Assembly (NCBI GenBank): GCA_009103225.1
Contig: RHPI01001132.1
Span: 124,001-188,000 of the forward strand
Reading direction: 5' to 3'
Source of the DNA: Chlorokybus atmophyticus
Lineage: Eukaryota > Plantae > Mesostigma and Chlorokybus algae
DNA: 64,000 nt
Shown here: in pieces, positions 1,334-62,086 of the stretch
Layout of the letters: every line of letters begins with the position of its first letter
Position numbering within the stretch: position 1 is the stretch's first letter
Position numbers and translations under genes: made by a program
Notes under the pieces: model-generated
What the model saw: only the letters and a program-made list of their open reading frames with translations
Database searches by the model: none
Told to the model about the DNA's origin: nothing

Positions 1334-1395
1334 TGCATTCGATCGGATTCGAACACAGGACCTTTCGAACAAACAAAGACGACGTCATAACCACT
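1334..1395 (-). pseudogene. 3' portion of a degenerate tRNA-like sequence (TGT at the anticodon position; tRNA pseudogene or SINE head), split by YR element 1
   Basis: Minus strand reads AGTGGTTATGACGTCGTCTTTGTTTGTTCGAAAGGTCCTGTGTTCGAATCCGATCGAATGCA, with B-box GTTCGAATCC. The matching 5' portion GCGGTTATAGTTT lies at 7830-7818. Stems pair poorly. Confidence 0.55.
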
Positions 1396-1567
1396 ATTAT
1401 ACTACTTTGTACAAGATGAACGATTTGCATTCCATTTGTTTCAAACAATTATCCTACCTACACTCCAACTTTGGCAAGAACACCTAAGCCCTTACAATCA
1501 TGTGCGTTCATCGTTATCAGTATGGTTTACGTGATGAACAACTATGAATGCATTGGACATTCTACCT
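1396..1567. repeat. Split direct repeat B2 of YR element 1
   Basis: ~170-bp direct repeat of 1987-2156 (attatactactttgtac...cattctacct). Confidence 0.9.
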
Positions 1568-1800
1568 GTACCGACAGTGGCTAGCAATGATGCGAAATGC
1601 CGTCGATGTGACATCAATATCGCACAGTCAGCAGCATGCTGCCGATGTAACAAGGATCTTACTTAGATGAGACTTATGCATCCAGGTTCACGATCCACTT
1701 GTCTTGTTCATGAGCATGAGTATGCACTTCGAAGCGCAATCGAGATGAGGCGCATGATTCTTGTGAAGCGCGGCGGCGCATTTAAACTGGGCGAGAAAGG

Positions 1801-2156
1801 CGAACTTTCGGGCATCGCAAGCAACGCCGCCGCTGAGGTAACGGCCGTAACTGCCTCTGTCGCCTGACACGTGTGTGTCAAGCAACAGAGGCAAACCGTA
1901 AGTTAAACTATATATGCTAATCACTTCCTAATCAATTTGTTAAACGAAACTCGCCGGCCAATAGTTAAAGCCGACGAGGAATGCCCATTATACTACTTTG
2001 TACACGATGAACGATGTACAGTCCTTTTGTTTCAAACCATCATCCTACCACAGTCCAACTTTTGCAAGATCACCTAAGCCATACGATCATGCGCGTTCAT
2101 CGTTATAAGTATGATTTACGTGATGAACAAGTGTGAATGCATTAAACATTCTACCT
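1801..2156. repeat. Internal A2 (1801-1986) + B1 (1987-2156) junction of YR element 1
   Basis: A2 matches 7620-7817, including a 40-bp palindrome; B1 matches 1396-1567; the two abut at 1986/1987. Confidence 0.88.
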
Positions 2157-2287
2157 CCCCCTCCCAAGCATATATCAGTAGGGAAGAGTTGTAGGTGTAA
2201 CGCCTGGTGTATTTGTATTACCAAAGTTGCAAATCGAGATAGTTGTGTTTAATTATCTGATAGTATTTAATCCTTGCGCAGATTGTT

Positions 2288-3566
2288 GTGTGCAGTTGTC
2301 TGACCATGTGTGTGATTGCTGTGCGGATGGACTTTGCACAGCGCTTGCAACATACCGCTGATACCCAACGCACCGCACGCGCGCCTGTGCGTCCGCAGCA
2401 AGTCACCAGCTGTAATGTTCATGAGCAAGCAGCGGCAGCGCTTTTCATAATCGAGCGCATCAGCCGTGAAGCTGTATCTGATGGCACTCGCGACAGACGC
2501 GATCGCGTCTGGCAAGAGTTTGCCAACTACCTGCAACATCATACGCTCAACATTGCCGTCGCCAATGTCACCCTAGCTGTTGTCACAAGCTACCTTGCTC
2601 GACACCGGACCGACACACACATTGGCAAATCTCGCAGGCTCGACCTCCATGGTCATCGCATGATTGCCAGCACCACACTGGACAACGTAGTTTCACATCT
2701 CATATGCTCGTTTAGACTTCTAGGGCGCATCAGCCCTAGGGACAGCGACACATTCACAAGGAACCCGCTTCTGTCCATAGACATGCGCGAGTTTCGCCAA
2801 GGATATGCAAAAATTGCTGTTCGGCAAGGAGTTCAACCTATTCCTCCTGTGCCATTGGCCATTAATGACATGCGTACACTGATCCTCTACTTCCAACAGC
2901 AGCTGTCCACCATACCTTAGGAATTGACAGTCACAGCATGATAAGGCTGTGCTCTGGCATTACTATGCACTTTGCCTATACCTATGATGCACATGGCAAC
3001 GGGGTGGTGAAGGTGCGTGCGTACGGATGCACGAGATACAAGCGGCAGGTTCTGGGCTGACGGCCACTGTAATACACCTCAAGAATTATAGCACCGGAGG
3101 CGCACCCACCATACAAGTGCGCAGCAGTGGTCTGCCTGTGGAGTTCTCCAAAGCGCTCTATGCCTATCTAACCTACTGTTGCGGGAGCTCCTTCGCCATC
3201 ACCACTGGTCCTCTATTTCGGCCTGTTGCTAAGAACAGGTTGAAGTGGGAAGAACATGGCATGTCTGGTAACTGCGCATACCATGTAATTGTGCGCTGTT
3301 GCAAGGCGTGTGGCATATATAGGCCGCACCTGGGGTTGCACTCTTTCAGGCATGGTGCCGCTCAGAGCGCCTTCCAATGTGGTGTTACTCTGGAAGAAAT
3401 ACAAGCTCAAGGCACATGGAGAAGTGCTGTCATCGTGCACCGTTACCTACATGCAAGGTACGCTTACCCAATGCACAAAAGCGCAAATGTATGGGTAGCG
3501 ACCAGGGTTGATGCTGTCTTCAGGTACTCGGGCACCACATTTAAACCATTCGGGCCGTGGGCCTAA
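2288..3566 (+). pseudogene. Tyrosine recombinase of YR element 1 (stops and a frameshift around 2918-3025)
   Basis: RGGE after a frameshift (~3000), HLK, LHSFRHGAA, QGTWRS...HRYL: the R-K-H-R-W-Y catalytic set. N-terminal ORF 2288-2920. Confidence 0.85.
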
Positions 3567-3870
3567 TCTCTCATAATAAGTGAATTGCCAATCGCGAAGC
3601 ACTGGCCACCACACAGTAGAGTGCCATTTAGGCACCAACACCACAACTGGCAGCTGGTAATACTGCAATAATGTTGTGGCTTCATGCAGGAGAGCCAATG
3701 GCGAGTGACACCAAACAAAGCCGCCCCCCAAGCGTTAAAGAACATCGCACCAGCTTGTAGTTCGAGCATTTCCTAAACTTCCAGGCATGTGTATGTAACT
3801 TATGTAAGCAGGCGCTTTCCTGTTCCAATCAGCTGCAAAACAGTCCAATGTTGGGTGTCCAACATGCTGC
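3447..3870 (-). pseudogene. Dam-like (N6-adenine methyltransferase-like) domain of YR element 1
   Basis: LDCFAA (DRFA-like), VWCHSP, VVVLVPKWHSTVWWPVL downstream of RNase H, the usual DIRS position. Confidence 0.7.
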
Positions 3871-3948
3871 TATATATGCGCGGTTGCGTCTGCGGTTAGG
3901 GCCCCTCCTCTGTCAGTAAATATGGATAATGCATCCGCATCGCGCAGC

Positions 3949-5396
3949 TCATCGCGCGAGCGCTACACATATCAGGGCAATATCACGCTCCCAGCACAAA
4001 GACCACAACTGAGGTAAAGCTTGCAGCACATAAGGCTCAAAAGCAGACAACTTGTTCAGCATTTGAATTGCTTGTTGACAATCACCAGTAATGCGCACTG
4101 TACAGTGCTGGAGAGCATGCGTGCGCGCCACTTCAGTAAATGCTTGCACATAAGCGAGTGCCTCCTTGACAGCCGACGGCAGTGACATATGCTCAGGCTT
4201 AAAGTTGCCCGCCATGCGAGGCCAAGTGCCTGTCGCCCCCCAACCAATTGTACCCGAAGCGTCCACATGCAGCTCAAGCAATATGGGGGGCTTCCACCAA
4301 GCATTGCCATCGTAAGTTTGCAAGCCAGCAGCAGCCCAATCACAGAAGTGTCTCAAAGCGTTCATATCACCCGCATTATCGTCCCATGCATCCGTGCCAA
4401 TACCAGATGCATCAATTTGCGAGCATAAATGCTTGCAGGTGCAAAAGCTAGCTTCAGCGCAATCAATTTGCCAGCAATGCATGCTAGGTGGCGCTTGGTC
4501 GATACAGGAGCCTCTGCCAATTCTTTCATCAGCTGCAATAGCTTAGCCAACTTGCTTGAGGGGACGGCAAAAGAGCCGGTCACTGTGTCCACCAGCAGAC
4601 CCAACAACTGCACTACTTGTTCCGACCACAATTGGCTTTTCTTCACAAAAATTTAGAAGCCAAGGGTCTTGAATAGACGCAATACACGGCGAATGCGCCA
4701 GCACAAATGCCAATGATTGGAATGGCTGAAGTGCATGTTGTCAATATAAGCCAGGCAAGGAAAACTAATTGCCCGCAAAGGCGTGAAGACACTAGACATT
4801 AAGGTCGTAAACAACCAGCTTTCTTGATTTAGGCCAAATAGCACTACAATCCATCTGTATGTGACTCCAACATAGCGCAAAACCAAGTAAGGCTTACTGT
4901 CCTCATGAATGGGCACATGTTGATACCCCGAATTTAAATCTGCTGTCACTTGCCAAAAATGGCGCTTTGTGTACAACAATATATCGCGTAACCGATCATA
5001 ACTAAAGGGAATGTGGCGCAAAAAAAGGTTGATATACCTCAGATCCATAGTGAGCCTCAAACGTTTCTCCTGCTCAACTACACCTATTCCAGTAACCACT
5101 GCCACATCATGCGCACTCACAACAGAGATTGCTTCTGTTTTGCCAAAGTTGGCCAATTTAGTGAAAACGTAATTGCGATGCATGGAGGCGGACTTGCGAT
5201 TGCGAAACACAACTGGTGTTGGGAAAATGTGTGACAGAGTAGGTCTAATGTCATCAACACCAAAGCCTTCTGCCTTCATCAATGCATGTAATTCTTCCCA
5301 CTTGCGTCGATTTAAAGTTTGAGTGCCCACCCATTGCAAGCGACGCCTATAATGCAACCAGTCCAGCACAAATGTCTTCTTGCCTTGCATGGTCAA
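3949..5396 (-). pseudogene. RT and RNase H of YR element 1
   Basis: LRLTMDLRYIN, DLNSGYQHVPIH, FGL, YIDN (from YIDD); RNase H HVDAS...KEALA...TGDCQ. Several frameshifts. Confidence 0.88.
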
Positions 5397-6239
5397 TCAC
5401 AACCTTGTGGTCCATACTGTAAGCCGTTGCTGTAAAGTGGCTGCTACAAAGTTCTCCGCATCCCGAGTTTCAGTGCATAGCTGTTCTGCTCAATGGGTTG
5501 CAGAGTTGAGATACTCTTCAAGGTCATTTTACACATGTGACAACTCTGCATCTATAGAACGGATGTCTTCTTGCTGCTGTGTGGCAGGTACGCTCGCAAC
5601 AGTGTGTGGCACTTGTGTAATAACATTAACATGCTCCTCTACTGGAGGTATATGGTCCACTGCCAATGCTGGCATTGCAGGATCCCACTCTGCTTGGATG
5701 CAGTCATCCTCAAAAAAAGCACTAATAGCGACCCGTTCGTCAGGTGTGCTATGTCTGCACACATGTAAGTCGATTAAGCCATGCCAAAGTTGACTAGTAG
5801 TTTCAGCTATGCCAACTGTACTTGTCCAGCAACATACAGCTGTGCATCATGCACACATAATATCGTCAGCATTGAAGACCTGCACATGTAGTATACAACG
5901 GTACATGACCCAAACATGCATACATGCGCATTTACGCGCTGCTATGATACACCAGCACCTCCTGACATGCACTGCCACTGCACACGCGCACTCGCGCATT
6001 GCTGTAATACACACACCAGCATCTTTGACATGCATTGCCACTGCACTACTTAGCAGATGTATTGGCTGCACTACTCACTGCTGCAAGGCCAGGCGCTACT
6101 GCTCTTGCATGGGTACATAATATGCTTCTTACTGAACTGGCATAGCCTGCTGACTGTAATTGCGGCCTCCGCGACCATAATCACCACGACCACCACGGCC
6201 GTAACCATTATGGCCGCGACCACGCTGAAACGGGGTGCT

Positions 6240-7330
6240 CCCTTTTTATGTAACAGAGCGCCTGCAGGCGCACCATTGCAAGTATGTTATGATGTGTAAC
6301 AAACTTCCAATGAGACTCACAGGTATGACTGTGCTCAGTGCGACCAGTTGTGCTACTACTCTACCATACAAGTGATGTGCACCATCACATGAATAAGCGA
6401 CGTGCCCTGCTTGACAAACATGACAGGGACCCAAGCGTGCATTGCTCTATTAACATGGTGCTGCAGCTAGTGTTGACGAACGGGCGCACGTAGCACCATG
6501 TCTGACGGCAACTGTTGTGCACGCAATATGCACACATTGTGCGACTTGCTGAACAGGCGTGCATAGCACCATTACAAATGATAGCAGCTGCTAAACAGGC
6601 TGCATGCACACATTGTGCGTGTTTATGAGCAGGCGCATTGCACCATTACATTGATCAGCAGTGGCCAATCATACTGCATGCACACATAATGTGATTTATG
6701 CTTGAGCAGTGTGCACATGCCAGCGCTTTGCTTCTATGTTGTGAGACAACTCTCAGATCAACAACTTGTTGAACAGACTTATTGAGGAATAGAAGTCTTG
6801 GCCTTTTGCATGGCTGCCTTGCCCTGGAAGCTGTAGGCGAGCTGTATCAAGCGGCGCATGACCTTGGCCTCCTTGTGTTTGCAATTGATGCGAGCATCGT
6901 TGATGATACCCCGCACCCCACTCGCAAAGGCTGTTGCAAAGTCTACATTTCCGTGCACATGCGTGAGCAGCATCTGATACAGGAGTGCCACCAACTGCGC
7001 AACTGGCGGACCTGTGAAGAGAGCGCGGCCAATTGCCTCGAAGCAGCCTTGCACGCCAGCAGAGAGCTTGCGCGTGCAATGCTCCTCCCACAAAGCATAT
7101 GTCTCCAAGGGATTAAACAGGCGCTTGATGAAGCCTGTGCGCTTGATGTACTTGGTATGCTTGTCTCCAAAATCGGAGCTGTCCACATCAGAGGAGGAGG
7201 ATGACGAGGAGGACGTGTGCTTATCCTTCTTCCTTTTGTTCCTCTTGACTTTCTTCTTTTTGTTTACCTCTTCCTTCTCCCCTGAAGAGGATGATACCTC
7301 CCCTCTAATATGCCTACGCCGAGGCACCTT
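6240..7330 (-). pseudogene. gag-like ORF of YR element 1
   Basis: Basic/Ser-rich ORF 6779-7327 and zinc-knuckle-like CHVCQAGHVAYSC (~6390-6425), between A1 and RT. Confidence 0.55.
6455..6720. repeat. Degenerate 74-76-bp tandem repeat (3-4 units) inside YR element 1
   Basis: atgcacacat at 6528, 6604 and 6678; gaac.ggcg...tagcaccat at ~6477 and ~6551. Confidence 0.75.
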
Positions 7331-7619
7331 GAGGAGCGACCTCCAAGGGCTGTGCAGCGTCTCCCAGCGTCACGCCCTAAGCCAGCGTCACGACATAACG
7401 CCTTTTGGCATGACCAGTCTCCACACATGACTTTTGCGGCGGTGGCGAGGCTATTGGCTCAGCAGGCTGCGTAGCCTTGCGCAAATTGCGCGCACGCCTA
7501 TTCCCCTCATTGGTCGCTTGTTCACCTTCAGTGGCCGCTTTCTTCCGGCAACGCTGCCCGCCCGCAGCCGCAGCTCGTTTCTTCAGCGGCATTGGGCACT
7601 CTTCCCCCCAAACTATCAT

Positions 7620-7817
7620 CGAACTTTCGGCCATCGCCAGCAGTGTCGCCAGCAACGCCGTCGGTGAAGTGATGGCCGTAACTGCCTCTGTTGCTTGACA
7701 CACGTGTGTCAAGCAACAAAGGCAAACCCTACCTTAGACCATATATGTTAAGCACTTACTCATCAATTTATCAAACGAACCTCGCCGGCCCAAAGTTGGA
7801 GCCGACGAGTAATGCCC
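7620..7817. repeat. Terminal repeat A1 of YR element 1 with 40-bp palindrome (7684-7723)
   Basis: Matches 1801-1986; gcctctgttgcttgacacac|gtgtgtcaagcaacaaaggc (one mismatch, no loop). Confidence 0.88.
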
Positions 7818-7857
7818 AAACTATAACCGCAAGTACCACCGGTACGTGCGGTTAACC

Positions 7858-7925
7858 TGTTGAAAACTAGTAATGCGCCTATTGTATGTGTATGCGCCTC
7901 TTACATACAAGTGTGCACAGTGTAT
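7858..7925 (-). mobile_element. Fragment of the 3' end of a copia LTR (family LTR1)
   Basis: tgttgaaaactagtaatgcgcc...tacaagtgtgcaca matches the LTR1 terminus; only GGTTA of the PBS remains. Confidence 0.6.
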
Positions 7926-12826: not shown

Positions 12827-15100
12827 TGTTGAGAAATAGTGATGCGCCTAGTGTGTGTGTATTTGCCTCTTACATACAAGTGTGCACACACTAAGGACAA
12901 GTGCAGCAAGCATGCCAACCATAAAAACAATGTGCGACCCACTGTATTAAGCAGTATACAGTGTCTTATATACTATGCTACTAAGCACTAGTCAACACTA
13001 GTCAACTCTGGTCAACACTAGTCAACACTAGTCAATGGTTAAAGGCAACGGTCAAAGTCAAAGTTGATTATGGTTGACCGTAACTGCCGTAATTCCCGTA
13101 ACTCTCGTAACTCCCGTAACCATAAAGGTTAAGCTGATCATACCAACTACATGTAGGCGCCGCCTATACATGTACTTTCTACAACCCATAACATTTAACA
13201 CTCCCACGCGAGCAGCTTGACCTTGAACTCCAAGATCTTCTCGCAAGCTTACCCACATTAACTTACTTCATTGAACACTCCCACGGATGTTGCTCCCATG
13301 GACTTGATGCTTGTCTCCATGACACCATCCTTCTCCTCGTGCTACCAAAAGGACTATCAGGTTCCAATACTCCTCGTTTCCTCCTCATAGTTGTCGCATC
13401 AGGTTCCACCACGCCACGCCTGACCTTGCTCAGGTGGTTTCGAAGACTCCCTCAATGGCAAACTATGCCATAATCTACACTGAGTTCTCTACCTTAGCAA
13501 TGCTGTACCAGAATGTAGGCCGTGCAAGGGTTAATCAGACCCTTCTACCAAGGGAAGCACCCCTCCCATCTCCTGTTAGCTAGCAATACAACGCAGTCCT
13601 TGCATGTCAATCAAGTGAAGTGTTCTACCCAGTACCGCACACCTGTGTGCTACCATAAACAACAGCTATGCAACCTCTAGTGTATGCAGCTCAACACTAG
13701 CAACTACTCATAGGCTAGCAGTAACTCTCATAGACATTTGTGTCTGCGACCTCCGTCTACGCATGTCCTTCACGCGCCCTTGCAGTGGGAGGGGACGGAC
13801 GAACACCATCCGCTGCAACTCCTTGAGGTCCTCACCAATGCTAGAAAGCAATCGCCATCATGGCGTGCTTCTCCTTAGTGGCCTCATCGTGGATCCTCTT
13901 GTGGCACTCGCGAATGAAGTGGCGCTGCATCTTGCAGTAGTGACACTCTTGGTCACGCGATAGCTTCCCACCACCTGCTTTTCTCCTGCTTCGTGTGTGT
14001 TGAGAAGATAAGGCAGCAAGTGCGATAGGTTCTCCACCATTCTCCATCTCCTGAACATCCAACTTGCCTTCCACAGCTAGCAGCTTAGGCACTACATCAT
14101 CAAACTTCAAAACCACATCCGAGGACTCAAACACAGCTACTAGCGTGGCAAAGCTCTCTCCTAAGCCAGCTAAGACTGCCCACGTCACCTCCTCTTCCTT
14201 CACATCATGGCCCACTGCTGCAAGGTCTTGCCAAAGCTCCCTTGCACACGAGATGTACTTCTGGATTGGTTCTTTGTGCTCCATCTTCAGAAGTGTCAGC
14301 TTGCGTCTCAGCTGCAACTTGCGCAAGTTGTATTGGCCTTGAAGAGGGTGTCGAAGACCTCCCACGCCTCACGTCCAGTCTTGCAATCCGCAATAAGAGG
14401 GAGATGGAAGTCTTTGACGTGCAAGCCTATCAGCGTAAAAGCTGATTGTGAGTTCTCTGTCCAGGTACCAGCGTCACCTGTAATTGGCCGCAATGATGTG
14501 GAGGAGGTGGGGTCGACAAAACTCCACAGCGTCTTACGGATCAGCACCAACTTCATCGACCATGAAGCATAGTTGTGCAGATCAAGCGACTTGAAGGGAA
14601 TCCTACCTGTGTCAGCCATTACTTGCTACACAATTGTACAGCTCACCCTCTCCCTAAGAACACTTAGCTAGTGGCCTTTTATGCTCAACACTTTCTCTCA
14701 CTAGTACAAGCAATCACACAAGCGAGTGTGGGCCCATAACCTGTTGAGAACTAGCGATGCGCCTAATGTGTGTGTATGCGCGTCTCATACAAGTGTGCAC
14801 ACACCAAGGAGAAGCGCAGCAAGCACGCCAACTACAGAGACAATGTGCAACCCATTGAGTTAAGCAGTATACAATGCCTTATATACTATGCCACCAAGCA
14901 TTGTCAACGTTAGCTAAAGTTAACACTAATCGACGCTAGTTAACGATCGAAGTCAATAGCGAAAATCGAAGTTGACTATGGTTAATCATAACTGCCGTAA
15001 CTCTTGCACCACTCGCAACTCCCGCAACTCTTGAGGTTAAGCTGATTGTACCCACTACATTTAGGTGCCGCCTATATAAATGTAGCTATAACCGTTAACA
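12827..15100 (-). mobile_element. gag-only non-autonomous copia-derived LTR element, copy 1 (TR-GAG-like)
   Basis: 5' LTR 15100-14742, PBS GGTTATGGGCCCAC (14741-14728), gag ~14619-13841 with a zinc knuckle (CHYCKMQRHFIREC), ~640 bp noncoding, PPT, 3' LTR 13200-12827. LTRs divergent; no matching TSD. Confidence 0.85.
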
Positions 15101-19622: not shown

Positions 19623-21104
19623 CTATTCTGGTGCTTTGGAGAGCGCGTCCGCCTCCTTGTTGAGTTCACGTGGTAACCACTCCACATGCAAGCGAATGCC
19701 GGCGGCAATGTAAGAAAATACGGCATGCCACTTGCTGCAAGTGTCCGGCCTCACTGCCCCCTTTGCGCATAATGTAGTACACATTGCGGGCATTGCCATA
19801 GCGCAGCACCGTGCGACCATGTAGCTCCTCCTCGACAGTGAGCAAGGCACACTCAAGTCCCAATAACTCGCGATGTGTTGAGGAAGTCAAGCACTCATCA
19901 GGTGTGATTCACATGTGCCCTTCGCCACGGGGGTAGCTATGCCATGGTACACTAGTCCCCAACCAGTGCGGCTAGCATCCACAAATTGCACTATGTTCAG
20001 CTGTATAGTACGCCAAATGGGTGTCATGTTAAGCTCCTCAAAGTGGTCTCTCGGCCACGATAACTCCGTGGTCTCAGGTTGGCGTAGCACCATGTGAGAG
20101 CTCCATGAGCGGCGGGTCTCAATCAAGCGGCGTGTATGCCAAGTCATGAGTTTGACGGCAGGGCCCAACACCATGAACATGGTTTGCAGCTTGCCACAAA
20201 GGGAGGCCAGCAACTTCACTGGCACATGGTGCCTGTTACCAAATGCGCGTTGCAAGTCCCTAAGCAAACCATTGCGCTTCTTGCCGGGGATATGAACAGT
20301 GCCAGCGTGTGTATCCCGCACAAAGCCGAGGAAGATGATGACTCTGCTCAGCACGATCTGCGCCTTGGTGTTGATCACCAGCCCGCACCATGCTGAATGT
20401 GCTTGCACAATGGACACGGTGGAGGCATGCTCCACCCTGGAGCGAGCAGCAAATAAGAAGTCGTCAATGTATGGCAACACGCGAATGCCCTGCACACGCC
20501 AACCGCGCACCAATTGCTTCATAATCTTTGTGAACACGAGGCAAGCCGTGCTCAACCCACATGACAACGAGCAAAACACTTTGCCCGCAAACGAGAACCC
20601 CAAGTAGCCCAAAAAGGCGGGGTGGATGTCCACATGATGATAGCCGGATATTAAGTCCGTAGAGAACAATCAGTCTTCAGGTTGCAGCAAGTCCGTGATG
20701 CTGCGTACATCCTCATACTTAAGTGGCGTGTTTACCATATAGGAGTTGACACAGCGCAAGTCCATAATGAGGCGCAACTTGCGGCCAGCATCGACCACGT
20801 TGAGTGGGCTCACCACGAGGGGGATTGTCACACACTCTTATGCGGCCCCACCATGCACTAGGTTGGCAATGGAAGCCGCAGCGAAGTCCGCAAACTCATG
20901 CACACCCTTGTGGTTGGTGAATGCCCATTCGCGGGGTGGGTCAGCCGCCCATGGTAGCTTGTACCCGTCCTCCACCCATGAGAGCACCATAGTAGACTCA
21001 CAGAAGTCACGCCATGCTGGCAAGGCATCATGCAGTCGATGACGCATGTAAGGCCCTTTAACAATGAGGTTGGCAGGGACGCGAGCAAACTCATGGTGCT
21101 TCAT
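19623..21104 (-). pseudogene. RT and RNase H of YR element 2
   Basis: WVEDGYKLPW; DLISGYHHVDIHP; YIDDFLF; FVDASRTGWG; WLPRELNKEADALSK. Confidence 0.9.
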
Positions 21105-26295: not shown

Positions 26296-29200
26296 TGTAA
26301 GGAGAGGGGGTGCTACCTCCTCCCTTTAATCCCCTACCCCAACACCACCACCAGCCACGCCGACCACACCGCCGCCGCCAGGGGCAACTGCCGAAGCAGA
26401 AGATCCCCTGGCTATGGCGGCTGCTGCGTTAGCAGTGCCGCCATACAGCTGATATCGACATGAGACTCATGTCTCATGTCGATATCAATGTTACAGTTAA
26501 GTAACACTACATTAGGGCCTTAACACTAGGTTAACGGCCCTAATACGGCTTAATTGGCTGTATATACCCATTGGGACCCTTATTTAATCCTAAATAAGGG
26601 CGGGGAACCTCTATAGAGGTAGCACTCCGTTACATTCCCCCCCACTTAGGTTTCAATGTCCTCATTGAAGGGTTAGCAAAGCCCCACCATGAGCACCGAG
26701 AACCAAAGCAGTGAGAGAACCAGGGCGGAAGCGGTAAAGATGTCTGCCAGCACCCTTTTACCGTCCGCGTGTGGACACAGCACTCCACTACCCCCGAAGA
26801 ATCTCTTGGCACTTGGTAAGATTCCTTTCGGGCTCCCACGTGTTGTGCTCAACACCATACCCTTTCCATTTCACTAAGTAAGACGGCGCGCGTCCGCGTC
26901 GAGGCTTACGGTGACTCAGGATTGCTTCCACCTCATACTCGAAAGGATCGTCGCCATCCACTGCAACGGGGGGTGGAGGAGGTTGAACCCAACCGTCAGA
27001 ACGGTATGGTTTCAGTACACTCACGTGAAACACATTGTGAATGCGTATCGACTTTGGCAAGTTCAAACGATACGCGTGAGTGCCGACCCGATCAGTTATT
27101 TTGAAAGGGCCTATCCAGCAAGGGAAAAACTTGCGGGTACCCACTCCCTTGATGGATACGTTTTTGGTACTTAAAAGCACCGAACAGCCCACATCGTAGT
27201 TGGCCTCTCTACGATGCGCATCAGCTTGGGCTTTTTGTCTGTCTTGCGCTGCGCGCAGACAGTCTTTTGCCAACGCTAACCTATCTTGCATGGCCGAAGC
27301 CATCTCGCGCGCTGCAGGTACGCGAGTCACGTCAGTAGCGAGCAACTTAATGTTCGCAGGACTCAGTGGATGCACTCCGTAATTCAAGAAGAACGGAGTC
27401 TCCTGCACACTCTCTTGCCATGCATTATTGATCGCAAACTCAGCCATTGGGAGATAAATATCCCAATCATTCTGTTTCGGGCTCACATAATGCCGGATGG
27501 TTTCCTCAATTACTTGATTGGCGCGTTCTGTCTGACCATCCGTCTGTGGATGGTAAGCAGTGCTCATGTTCTGCTGAATGTGTAAGAGGCTGCATAGCGA
27601 CTTCCAAAACTGAGCCACAAATCGCGGATCGCGATCTGACACAAAGTTGCGGGGCAAGCCATGCAACTTGAACACAGACGCAACAAAAACCATCGCCAAC
27701 TCACGGGAGCCTATCTCCGTGCGACAAGGGACAATGTGGACCATTTTTGTCAAACGATCCACAAAAACTGCAACCGCAGTGTGACCTAATGATGTCTCTG
27801 GGAGCTCAGTAATTAAGTCCATACTCACACTTTCCCATTTGCCATCAGGAATAGGCAATGGTCGCAGCAAACCAGCGGGTTTCTGACGTAACGGCTTATC
27901 ACGCTGACATTTGTCACACGTGTCCACATACCGTTTTACGTCAACAGGCAACGATGGCCACCAATACAACTGCTGCGCTGCCTTAACAGTCTTGCGACTG
28001 CCAAAGTGCCCAGCGTACGGTGGATCGTGTACATCAGCTATGCATTTTGCACGCAATCCAGCATGGTCAGGTATTACCAAGCTGGTGCCCACATAATACA
28101 AGTTGTCTCGTTTGTTCAGCTTTTGCACGTTGTCCTCCGCCGAGAACCATGGGTCAAAAGCATACCCTTGCACAACAGCTTGCACAAACTCATCATCCGG
28201 TGGCATTGTACCGCGCGTCGCAAGCAATTGCGCACGCATAACTGCCAACAATAATGGACAACGACTCAGAGGATCAGCAACATTAGTTCTGCCTGGCCGG
28301 TATACCCACTCAAAGGTATACCGAGACAGAAACTCATTCCAGCGAGCTTGCCTTCGTGACAAGTTTTGCTGTGTTGAGAAATACACCAATAGATTATGAT
28401 CAGTCACCACTGTGAACTGAACCCCCTCCAAGTAACATCGCCATGTTTCCAAAGCATGTACTATACCAAGCAACTCTTGCTCGGTGGTAGTGTAATTTAC
28501 CTCTGCTGGAATGAACTTCCTACTCTCATAAGCACATGGTCTGCCATCTTGCAACAGTACTGCACCACACCCAAGGGTGGACGCATCGCTAACCACAGTG
28601 AAATGCTTGTCCCAGTTTGGCAATGCCAACACTGGAGCAGAAGTCAAAGCTAGCTTCACCTGTTGCATAGCAGCTTCTTGTTCAGCTGTCCATAAGAATG
28701 GAGCATCTTTTCGCAACAGTTTTGTCAAAGGCACCACTACTGTGGAGTACCCCATTATAAACTTGCGAAAGTAGTTTGCCAATCCCAAGAATGATCGCAG
28801 CTGATGGATATTCTTAGGTTGAGGCCAATCCTTTACAACTTGCACTTTGCGAGGGTCAGGTTTCACACCCGCACCGCTCACAATGTGCCCCAAGAATGGC
28901 AACTCCGTCTTGCAGAAGTCACACTTTGCAAGATTGGCAAACAAGCGATGTGTACGCAGCAAGGCGAACACCGCTTCCAAGTGCTGCTTATGCTCTTCCT
29001 TGGTTTTACTAAAGACAATGATGTCATCCAAGTAAACCATACCATACTTGCCAAGTATGCCACCAAAAATCTTATTCATTTCCTTCTGAAACACTGCCGG
29101 CGCATTAGTCAATCCAAAAGGTAACACTTTGTATTGATAATGGCCCGACGGTGTTCTGAATGCTGTTTTGTAAACATTAGAAGGATGAATCCGGATTTGA

Positions 29201-32200
29201 TGATACCCACTTGTCAAGTCCAACGTACTAAAGTACGCATTTCCCGACAGTTTATCAAACACATCATCAATCCGGGGCAACGGGTATCGATTCTTTACCG
29301 TGATCTTGTTCAAAGCACGGTAATCCACACACATGCGCAGCTTTTCATTCTTTTTCATCACAAACAAGATGGGCGCGCCAAAGGGTGAAGAACTCGGTTC
29401 AATAAATCCCTTTTCCAATAATTCTTTGATTTGAGTTTCCATTTCCCCCCTCTCTCGGGGGCTCAGCCTATATATAGGCCGAAGCGGAGGCTCACTGTCA
29501 GGAATGAGTGGTATTGTGTGTCCGACACCTCGATTAGGAGGTAAGCCTGGCAATTAATCTAAGAACACATCTTGATACTTCTCAATAATGTCTGCAACAC
29601 AATCTGTATTTCCCGGCACAAAGTCGTCCGACGACGTTAAGTGTACCACAAAAGCCGGTGTGTTTTTGCGCAACGCACGTTTCACTTGCAGTGCAGTGAG
29701 TAGCGCAGGGTCGGGCTGCTTGTGGTCCAAGCTATGTGACCCTTTCACAGACAATGTTACACGCTTACGACCTTTCTTTACCGTGCACAAACGTGCGCTA
29801 GTATCCAATGTCATTTTAACATTTTCCTGCCATTCCTGTCCTAATACCACATCAACACCTGATATGTCGATGGATACCACTATGAAAGTAAGAGTGGCAT
29901 GATAATTACCAATCTTTACTTTCATTTTTATTTCCCCTTTCACTGGCAACGCACCCCCCGCACCGGCAGCTGAAAATGCTGAGGGTTTGCACGCTATCTT
30001 GTTGCGCACAACCCATTGTTCCTCAACGAAGTTGTGTGTTGCACCAGTGTCAATCAAGAACGAACTGTTTACACCTTGCATTGTGCCACTAAATGTCCAC
30101 AACAGAGGTACCACCCGTCCTTGAAATGTAGCCAAGAGTCCATGACTAATGCGAGGGTTGATCAAGATGGCTGACAACCGTACTGTCCTTGTTTCACGCT
30201 TGCTGAATTGCTTCAACACAGACCCTCCGCGAGTATGTTTTAACCATGGGCCATGATACTTTGGCACCATCACCACCATACTCAAGGTTCTGTGCTTATT
30301 CTGCAACTCATTCAATGCATGCGACACATCGGTAAGCATGTTGAACTCCACAAGTACAAGCACACAAGCATTCTCTTCCACTTTTTCAACATCAAAGAGT
30401 GGCAACTTGTCATGTGCTTGCCATGCATGTGTCATTACATGCACTTGAGACAGATCATCAAACCAGTTTGCTACTTGCATCTCAAGCAACTGGCTATCAA
30501 TGGCATCTACATTAATCACGGCGTAATCCTATTCAACCTTCTTGGCCTTGCCCTTCTTGGCGGGGCAGTGTTTTGCAATGTGACCCGGCTGGTGACATAC
30601 GTAACAGGTGCGAGCCGCAGCGGGTGTAGCACCACCAGCAGATGTGCCACCGGTCGGAAGCGTGAATGTCTTTGCCTTCTTTGCCGTGTGCGCACTCGGC
30701 TGAGGGTAACGCTTTCCTCCCACCCCGTGCGGCTTGGCCGCAGCTGCCACATGTGCCTTTTCCTGCACCGCCGTGTCATCACTGTACAAATACACGCTCA
30801 GCTTCTGCAGCTGGGCCAAGTCCTCAGGAACCCAAGGAAGTCCCGTTGCCGTGTTGTACTGCAGCTAATCGCGCCCACGCGCATCCAAGCCGCGCTTATA
30901 CAACTCAAACTGCTCAGCCTTGTCCATGGGCATGAGGCCACTGTTCACGCGGCCCACCAACGCTTGGAACTCCTGCAGATAGACTGAAGCCGTCCTGCCA
31001 TTCTGTCGCAGCTTGTTGAGCTTGTTGCGAGCCTGAGTAGCTGGATCCATGCCACCATAGCGCTCCATAAGGAACTTAAATAGTGCCTCCACTGTCTTCG
31101 TTGCACCATCCTCTATCTGCCTCGCCCACTCGGCGAGAGCGTCAGATGGCATGAGCAACTCAGCAACAGCAATGTGCTCGCCAACTGGTCGCTTCAGTGC
31201 TGTCAAGTAGTGCTCAACAGTGACCACCCAATCATGGATGCTGACACTGCCGTTGGGCTTGAACTTCTCAGGCTTGTTCAGTGCTGTAACCGGCAGCCCC
31301 GCTGATGCTCCAGCTGCTGAAGTAGCACCCGCCACCTGTTGGCGCAGCGCCACCAACTCAGACTGCATAGCATCGAGGCGTGCCGTCAACTGCACTCGTC
31401 CAGTCAACTTGTCTTCCAAGTTAGGTCATAAGTACCAGAACACGTCCTTGCAACGCTGTGAGGTTTCCACTCCCAAGTTGACCAAAGCCTCAAACGCCAT
31501 TCGCTTGCCTTGGTAAGGGAGAGGCTTATCGTAAACAGCCATCAGAGCAGCCACCTTCGGATCACCGCGCACGAGTGGCGGAACATTGTTCGTCAACTCG
31601 TGCTCAATCATGCGGATCACCATCTCCTTGCTCGCGCGAGGGAGAGTGGCAAAATCTGTTGCATAGCTATCACGAACCTTTTGTGCCCATGCATCCCACA
31701 CTTCCTGACGAAGCTGTGGGTGAGCATCGATCAAGACTTTGCGCTCTCGCGCATACTTCTCAATAGCCCCACCAATGACAGACTGTGTGTCCATTGTAGC
31801 TGGCCCACTCTGAGTAGATTGATCGGGAGAAGCTTCGCTATCCTGCGCAGCTTCCTCTTTGTCACTCTCAGTGAGCTTGTAGCTCTCACTCGTGTCCGAG
31901 TCTCTCGCTTTGTCATCACTTGATGGTTCGTATGATGACGATGAGTCAGGGACGGTAAAGTACTTCTCACCTCCCTCTCCTTGGTCAGACATCTGCCCAA
32001 AGACAGCCGTTAGCAAGTGCACAAGTACTCAGATTGTGCACTGCAATACAGGCAAAATCCAATAATTTTGTCTCGTCAAGTTTTGAGGCGTTACGGTGGA
32101 GCTTACAGCCCCAAAAGAGCTCTCCACACACCTCTCAACTAGACACTCACTCTGCAACAAATCGTGCGCGAATCCACGCGACGGTTCACGAGTTATGATC

Positions 32201-33849: not shown

Positions 33850-34968
<1,119 letters not shown>

Positions 34969-61794: not shown

Positions 61795-62086
<292 letters not shown>

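Follow-up and report, generated by a model that had tools for sequence, protein, structure and literature searches.

Among the described systems closest to the element reported here are Kangaroo of Volvox carteri and the PAT-type retroelements, which encode a reverse transcriptase (RT) and a tyrosine recombinase (YR), carry split direct repeats and insert without target site duplication (TSD); the YR gene of Kangaroo is inverted relative to gag and pol (PMC4157794). In the Kangaroo subgroup the internal repeats lie between the methyltransferase (MT) and the YR (PMC4157794). In the integration model for DIRS-1, about 3 bp of identity suffice for the YR to recombine a circular intermediate with the chromosome, again without TSD (PMC3266345), and DIRS-1 of Dictyostelium inserts preferentially into other DIRS-1 copies (PMC5006619). 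Association with tRNA genes is described for Ty1, Ty3, Dictyostelium TRE, DGLT-A and Skipper-2. These elements rely on a DDE integrase or on target-primed reverse transcription, and their insertions lie upstream or downstream of the tRNA gene, a targeting shown by many copies (PMC5006619). Here we describe a DIRS/PAT-type YR retroelement of 6,422 bp on the minus strand (1396-7817) of a 64-kb stretch of Chlorokybus atmophyticus DNA (contig RHPI01001132.1), the whole of which was analysed and is called the window below. The element splits a decayed tRNA-Val-like sequence within its A-box, probably as the result of a single opportunistic insertion.

Repeat finding and pairwise alignment were applied for defining the extent of the element. 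Its split direct repeats are arranged as A1...B1A2-spacer-B2, and both the A start (GGGCATT) and the B end (TATAAT) are sharp limits of repeat similarity. Read on the minus strand and with a slash marking the joint, the left junction is GCGGTTATAGTTT/GGGCATT (7818/7817), the internal B1/A2 junction is ...GTAGTATAAT/GGGCATT (1987/1986) and the right junction is ...GTAGTATAAT/AGTGGTTATGACG (1396/1395). The ambiguity of the left junction amounts to one T only. No TSD is present: the flanks rejoin to a continuous tRNA-like D-arm in which no base is repeated or missing. Searches of the 64-kb window with the element (blastn and tblastn) revealed no further copy. Both A repeats contain a near-perfect palindrome of 42 nt (TGCCTCTGTTGCTTGACAC...GTGTCAAGCAACAGAGGCA; 7683-7724 and 1852-1893), which may serve the element as a hairpin or as a site of protein binding.

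The interrupted sequence was rebuilt by joining 7830-7818 to 1395-1334, yielding a 75-mer that is clearly derived from tRNA-Val. The insertion lies between nt 13 and 14 of this 75-mer, within the A-box, and no base was duplicated or lost. As a reference we used the human tRNA-Val-AAC sequence printed in PMC4928997, in local pairwise alignment only. The 75-mer is identical to it at 47 of 73 positions and reaches a global alignment score of 17 (z about 8), whereas shuffled sequences reach −21 ± 4.6 and the best of 20,000 genomic 75-mers scores 1; with tRNA-Ala (PMC4928997) the score is 5. The D-arm formed by the join, TAGTTT/AGTGGTTATGACGT, corresponds to TAGTGTAGTGGTTATCACGT in tRNA-Val, and A-box and D-arm together agree at 18 of 20 positions. 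The variable loop and the B-box region are likewise conserved between the two sequences. The A-box TAGTTTAGTGG is completed only across the join and stands at tRNA spacing from the B-box TGTTCGAATCC at 1345-1355. On both strands of the window (128 kb) a B-box with one mismatch or less occurs only twice, and we estimate the chance of finding one at the correct spacing from the insertion point at about 2e-4. Furthermore, ARAGORN relaxed to 85% stringency calls a tRNA over positions 1 to 75 of the joined sequence, while none of 2,923 random genomic 75-mers (0/2,923) was called even at 80% stringency.

By ordinary criteria the 75-mer is not a tRNA gene, it is a decayed relic. ARAGORN at default settings found no tRNA in the window and none in the joined 75-mer. 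The Rfam runs, which covered only the window and the 3′ 62 nt, yielded no match at gathering scores in the former and none at E ≤10 in the latter. Counted by hand, 11 of the 21 stem pairs are intact, with 5/7 in the acceptor stem, 3/4 in the D-stem, 1/5 in the anticodon stem and 2/5 in the T-stem, and the anticodon arm has two extra nucleotides. A T-run terminator is absent downstream of the 75-mer, where the sequence continues with tgtttcttaac and shows no run of four T. In total the relic carries roughly 10 or more defects, compared to about 5–6 changes expected since the insertion from the divergence of the repeats.

An earlier note on this stretch, made from the sequence alone, had described the locus as a YR retroelement within the A-box of a tRNA-like gene. 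We confirm all three junction positions given there as well as the quoted 75-mer, and the D-arm has the correct reading over the proposed TSD-free crossover at T13/A14. The placement of the insertion in a tRNA-like A-box is upheld by the alignment z value, the ARAGORN call at 85% stringency and the rarity of the B-box. The note had also made its reading depend on a tRNA or SINE (short interspersed nuclear element) homologue of the 75-mer, which we found in tRNA-Val, and had cautioned that the stems pair poorly, in agreement with our count.

A second claim concerned the element itself, whose own junction was said to resemble an A-box. Indeed, the B/A junction TAGTATAATGG and the target A-box TAGTTTAGTGG agree in 9 of 11 letters. 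This part of the claim stands, but the suggested mimicry does not. In the element the crossover follows position 9 of the 11-mer, in the target it follows position 6, so that the two are 3 nt out of register. The 9/11 match therefore cannot be the recombination core; to serve as such it would require a loss of 3 nt on one side and a gain of 3 nt on the other. Between 12 and 14% of random genomic 40-mers match the junction or the target equally well in ungapped comparison (P about 0.13), and in register the junction and the target are identical at 13/40 positions, with a single shared T at the crossover. A-box mimicry by the junction is no better than chance and is not supported.

The coding content identifies the element as a member of the DIRS order of PAT type, kangaroo-like and with an inverted YR. 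The RT region matches Pfam RVT_1 with E=1.5e-6 and 28.5 bits, slightly below the cut-off of 29.6, and homologues of this RT carry PF00078. It is collinear with L002 and L003, two relatives from metagenomes introduced below. Its active-site motif reads YIDN (4737-4748), where YIDD is expected; Y217, I218 and D219 are invariant in five aligned relatives. The YR matches Pfam Phage_integrase with E=5.8e-6 and 26.6 bits against a cut-off of 27.1, its translation displays HSFR...Y motifs (HxxR, Y), and it is homologous to minus-strand open reading frames (ORFs) of L002 and L003. A methyltransferase-like domain, which PAT-type elements have after the RNase H, might reside at 3447-3731: neither this region nor 3949-4482 has a Pfam match, and the test for an MT returned positional conservation with L002 only. 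The copy is old and inactivated, since its ORFs are broken, its RT reads YIDN and its repeat pairs have diverged by 12–16%. Table 1 gives an overview of the features of the locus.

Table 1 Features of the element, its target and the adjacent LTR-end-like fragment (positions in the window; LTR, long terminal repeat)
Feature	Position	Strand	Evidence or remark
tRNA-Val-like 3′ part, 62 nt (D-loop to discriminator)	1334..1395	-	41/60 identical to corresponding part of tRNA-Val-AAC
3′ element end, terminal repeat B2	1396..1567	-	88% identical to B1
Unique spacer between A2 and B2, 233 bp	1568..1800	-	~230 bp in relatives L002 and L003
Internal repeat A2	1801..1986	-	84% identical to A1
Internal repeat B1	1987..2156	-	End abuts A2, hence stand-in for circle junction
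Tyrosine recombinase, antisense to gag/RT, split by frameshift (2288-2920 + 3027-3566)	2288..3566	+	Pfam Phage_integrase
Tail of pol-side ORF, tail-to-tail overlap with recombinase gene	3447..3731	-	No Pfam match
Post-RT region, place of RNase H in DIRS elements	3949..4482	-	tblastn to L002 10852-11298, E=3e-13; no Pfam match
Reverse transcriptase, two ORF pieces (4653-5396 + 4362-4646)	4362..5396	-	Pfam RVT_1
Tandem repeat array, about three units of 74-76 bp, between gag-position ORF and RT	6478..6687		Repeat finding
gag-position ORF, 182 aa, lysine/serine-rich	6779..7327	-	Function from position only; no Pfam match
Terminal repeat A1	7620..7817	-	Contains 42-nt palindrome 7683-7724
tRNA-Val-like 5′ part, 13 nt (acceptor 5′ strand, nt 8-9, D-stem 5′ strand)	7818..7830	-	Pairs with 3′ part across the insertion
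LTR-end-like fragment, 62 bp	7858..7919	-	84-90% identical to last 62 bp of chromovirus LTR family; rest of LTR absent there

With Kangaroo the Chlorokybus element shares RT and YR, split direct repeats in the order A1...B1A2...B2, the lack of a TSD and the inverted YR. Unlike in Kangaroo, the internal repeats B1A2 (1801-2156) are found on the far side of the YR (2288-3566), just before the 3′ terminal repeat, a placement that resembles the 'novel' PAT form of Daphnia pulex (PMC4157794). DIRS-1 differs in having inverted terminal repeats, whereas the Chlorokybus element has direct split repeats and a tRNA relic as its target. A physical association with a Pol III-type (RNA polymerase III) sequence is common to this element and the tRNA-targeting retrotransposons, but the Chlorokybus insertion lies inside the tRNA-like sequence and is known from one copy.

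Database searches returned distant relatives. With the RT as query the best identity in the protein collection was 31–35%, and a search of a library of 1.84 billion representatives with the YR gave 64 YR-like matches, the best of which is 34% identical (E=4.5e-9). A metagenome scan with the RT sequence yielded no match. Scanning with an RT alignment detected 30 loci of 28–39% identity, mostly short, among which complete repeats are found only in L002, L003 and L004. L002 (6103-14021) and L003 (6351-14465) are on long eukaryotic contigs of the JGI (Joint Genome Institute) metagenomes 3300060284/5. Together with L004, which we group with L003, they resemble the Chlorokybus element in gene order, inverted YR, the arrangement A1...B1A2-spacer-B2 with a spacer of ~230 bp and the lack of a TSD. 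They differ in being young copies (repeats 94–98% identical) and show only about 30–31% RT identity to the Chlorokybus element. The junctions of L002 and L003 share 2–3 nt with their targets (CAG and AG), just as predicted by the published DIRS model of 3-bp identity without TSD (PMC3266345). Targets and own junctions of these two show a loose in-register similarity (21/53 and 23/52), and their rebuilt empty sites are not tRNA-like. Short in-register blocks, CTGCTC and GAACT, are seen just inside the A start of L002 and L003. The closest relative of the YR, with 34% identity, is L001 (positions 107-2080, Logan SRR23617307), a contig of 2 kb in which the YR gene stands tail-to-tail with a convergent ORF; this suggests that the inverted-YR layout also exists in the organism of origin.

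Taking these data together, we consider it probable that the locus represents a single, old and opportunistic insertion of a PAT/kangaroo-like element into a tRNA-Val-derived sequence, today a dead relic, and not proof of a family that targets tRNA genes. Most likely a circular DNA intermediate of the element, presenting the junction of B end and A start, would have been recombined with the chromosome by the element's own YR. The event left neither duplication nor deletion, and its crossover is at nt 13/14 inside the A-box. A very short identity, the one shared T, would have been all that integration needed, and specificity would have been lacking. The target may have originated from a tRNA-Val gene or pseudogene, or from the tRNA-like module of an LTR-type element.

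Several observations weigh against an opportunistic event. tRNA-like DNA is rare in the window, which holds this one instance in 64 kb, no tRNA genes and one other near-B-box. For a random insertion to fall exactly into such DNA is unlikely a priori, and we estimate the probability at about 1e-3 per insertion. Furthermore, a block of 10 nt in the A start (CGTCGGCTTT) agrees at 9 positions with CGTCGTCTTT in the target at an offset of 1 nt. The probability of such a block is P=0.006 if offsets are limited to ±1 and 0.12 if any offset is allowed; it is located in the part for D-stem and anticodon stem, outside the A-box. This match was noticed post hoc and could hint at a sequence preference. 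Finally, the relatives used for comparison have an RT identity of ~30% and thus give little information on the specificity of the Chlorokybus family itself.

The alternative that survives best assumes an ordinary nested insertion into a tRNA-like module of another retroelement, such as the leader of an LTR element or of a terminal-repeat retrotransposon in miniature (TRIM), or a tRNA-derived SINE. Support comes from the neighbourhood of the target. An LTR-end-like fragment (7858-7919) precedes the tRNA-like sequence by 27 nt, and the 5 nt that follow the fragment (ggtta) match the side of the primer-binding site in two 5′ LTRs of the chromovirus family. The A-box is situated 35–45 nt beyond the LTR-like end. 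In the window the chromovirus family has a pol on the minus strand at 26788-29553 and eight other copies of the LTR end (near 12827, 14737, 18684, 24872, 33268, 37364, 43612 and 45118). The missing T-run terminator after the 75-mer would also fit a module of this kind. Against it, neither a second LTR nor any other repeat links the two flanks, and a search of the window for uninterrupted copies of the 75-mer, as suggested in the earlier note, revealed no other copy of it or of its flank. We regard a retroelement-borne target as unlikely, while giving it some weight. Two variants were rejected. An intact TRIM or LTR element as host is at odds with the absence of a repeat pairing the two flanks, and an origin by read-through into a primer tRNA beside the LTR-like end would demand an antisense tRNA-like sequence, whereas the one found is in sense orientation.

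A further explanation, which takes up the inference of the earlier note, is a DIRS-order family that recombines site-specifically into tRNA-type (Pol III) genes at or near the A-box, either by sequence recognition through the YR or by tethering to a Pol III factor. Among prokaryotic elements, tRNA genes are a frequent target of YR integrases. The precise insertion at nt 13/14 of a tRNA-derived sequence, in a window where such DNA is rare, speaks for a family of this kind, as does the 9/10 agreement, nearly in register, of the A start with the D-stem/anticodon-stem region of the target. Nevertheless, the proposal is based on a single copy, the A-box mimicry is off register by 3 nt and of a quality expected by chance (P about 0.13), and the in-register identity of 13/40 includes a microhomology of only 1 nt. 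The most similar block is found not in the A-box but in a region peculiar to this type of tRNA, and the two relatives of the same layout, L002 and L003, are not inserted in tRNA-like sites. No tRNA-targeting DIRS element was found in our literature search, and a literature search on Pol III-driven TRIMs yielded nothing useful. Targeting by such a family appears distinctly improbable to us.

That the flanks of 13 nt and 62 nt belong to the element, or that the tRNA-like target is an artefact of the join, can scarcely be right and is largely refuted: the hexamer GGTTAT does occur in both flanks near the ends, but one copy is part of the acceptor strand and the other part of the D-loop in the tRNA-like sequence, the flank nucleotides are absent from the internal B1/A2 junction, and the join rebuilds the D-arm of tRNA-Val (18/20), the D-stem and the acceptor stem. 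GGTTAT was also considered as a target duplication with correspondingly longer element ends, and this was rejected because no extra bases are seen at the internal junction and the join restores the tRNA D-arm exactly.

Besides the element, RT matches in the window are confined to the chromovirus and to a retroelement at 20448-20936. This latter stretch (minus strand), with 27% identity to the DIRS RT, has an LTR copy on either side and no recombinase match nearby; it probably represents a different retroelement, which may be of LTR type. The window also includes two runs of C, 1,119 nt at 33850-34968 and 289 nt at 61798-62086, each followed by an N, and four further single N are scattered over it. 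The C runs look like a masking or assembly artefact rather than biology.

The locus offers a clean case of DIRS/PAT integration without TSD, and it is precise to the nucleotide because the tRNA scaffold allows the empty site to be rebuilt. The targeting of tRNA genes has evolved repeatedly, on the one hand in retrotransposons equipped with DDE integrases or dependent on target-primed reverse transcription, on the other hand in the YR integrases of prokaryotes. It would be a long shot to propose that the Chlorokybus PAT/kangaroo-like family prefers tRNA-Val-type Pol III genes within the D-arm and does so through its YR. If true, this would be the first eukaryotic YR retrotransposon that targets tRNA genes. 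Such a family would link both worlds and would provide, from a eukaryote, a site-specific recombinase whose safe-harbour target is both defined and multicopy.

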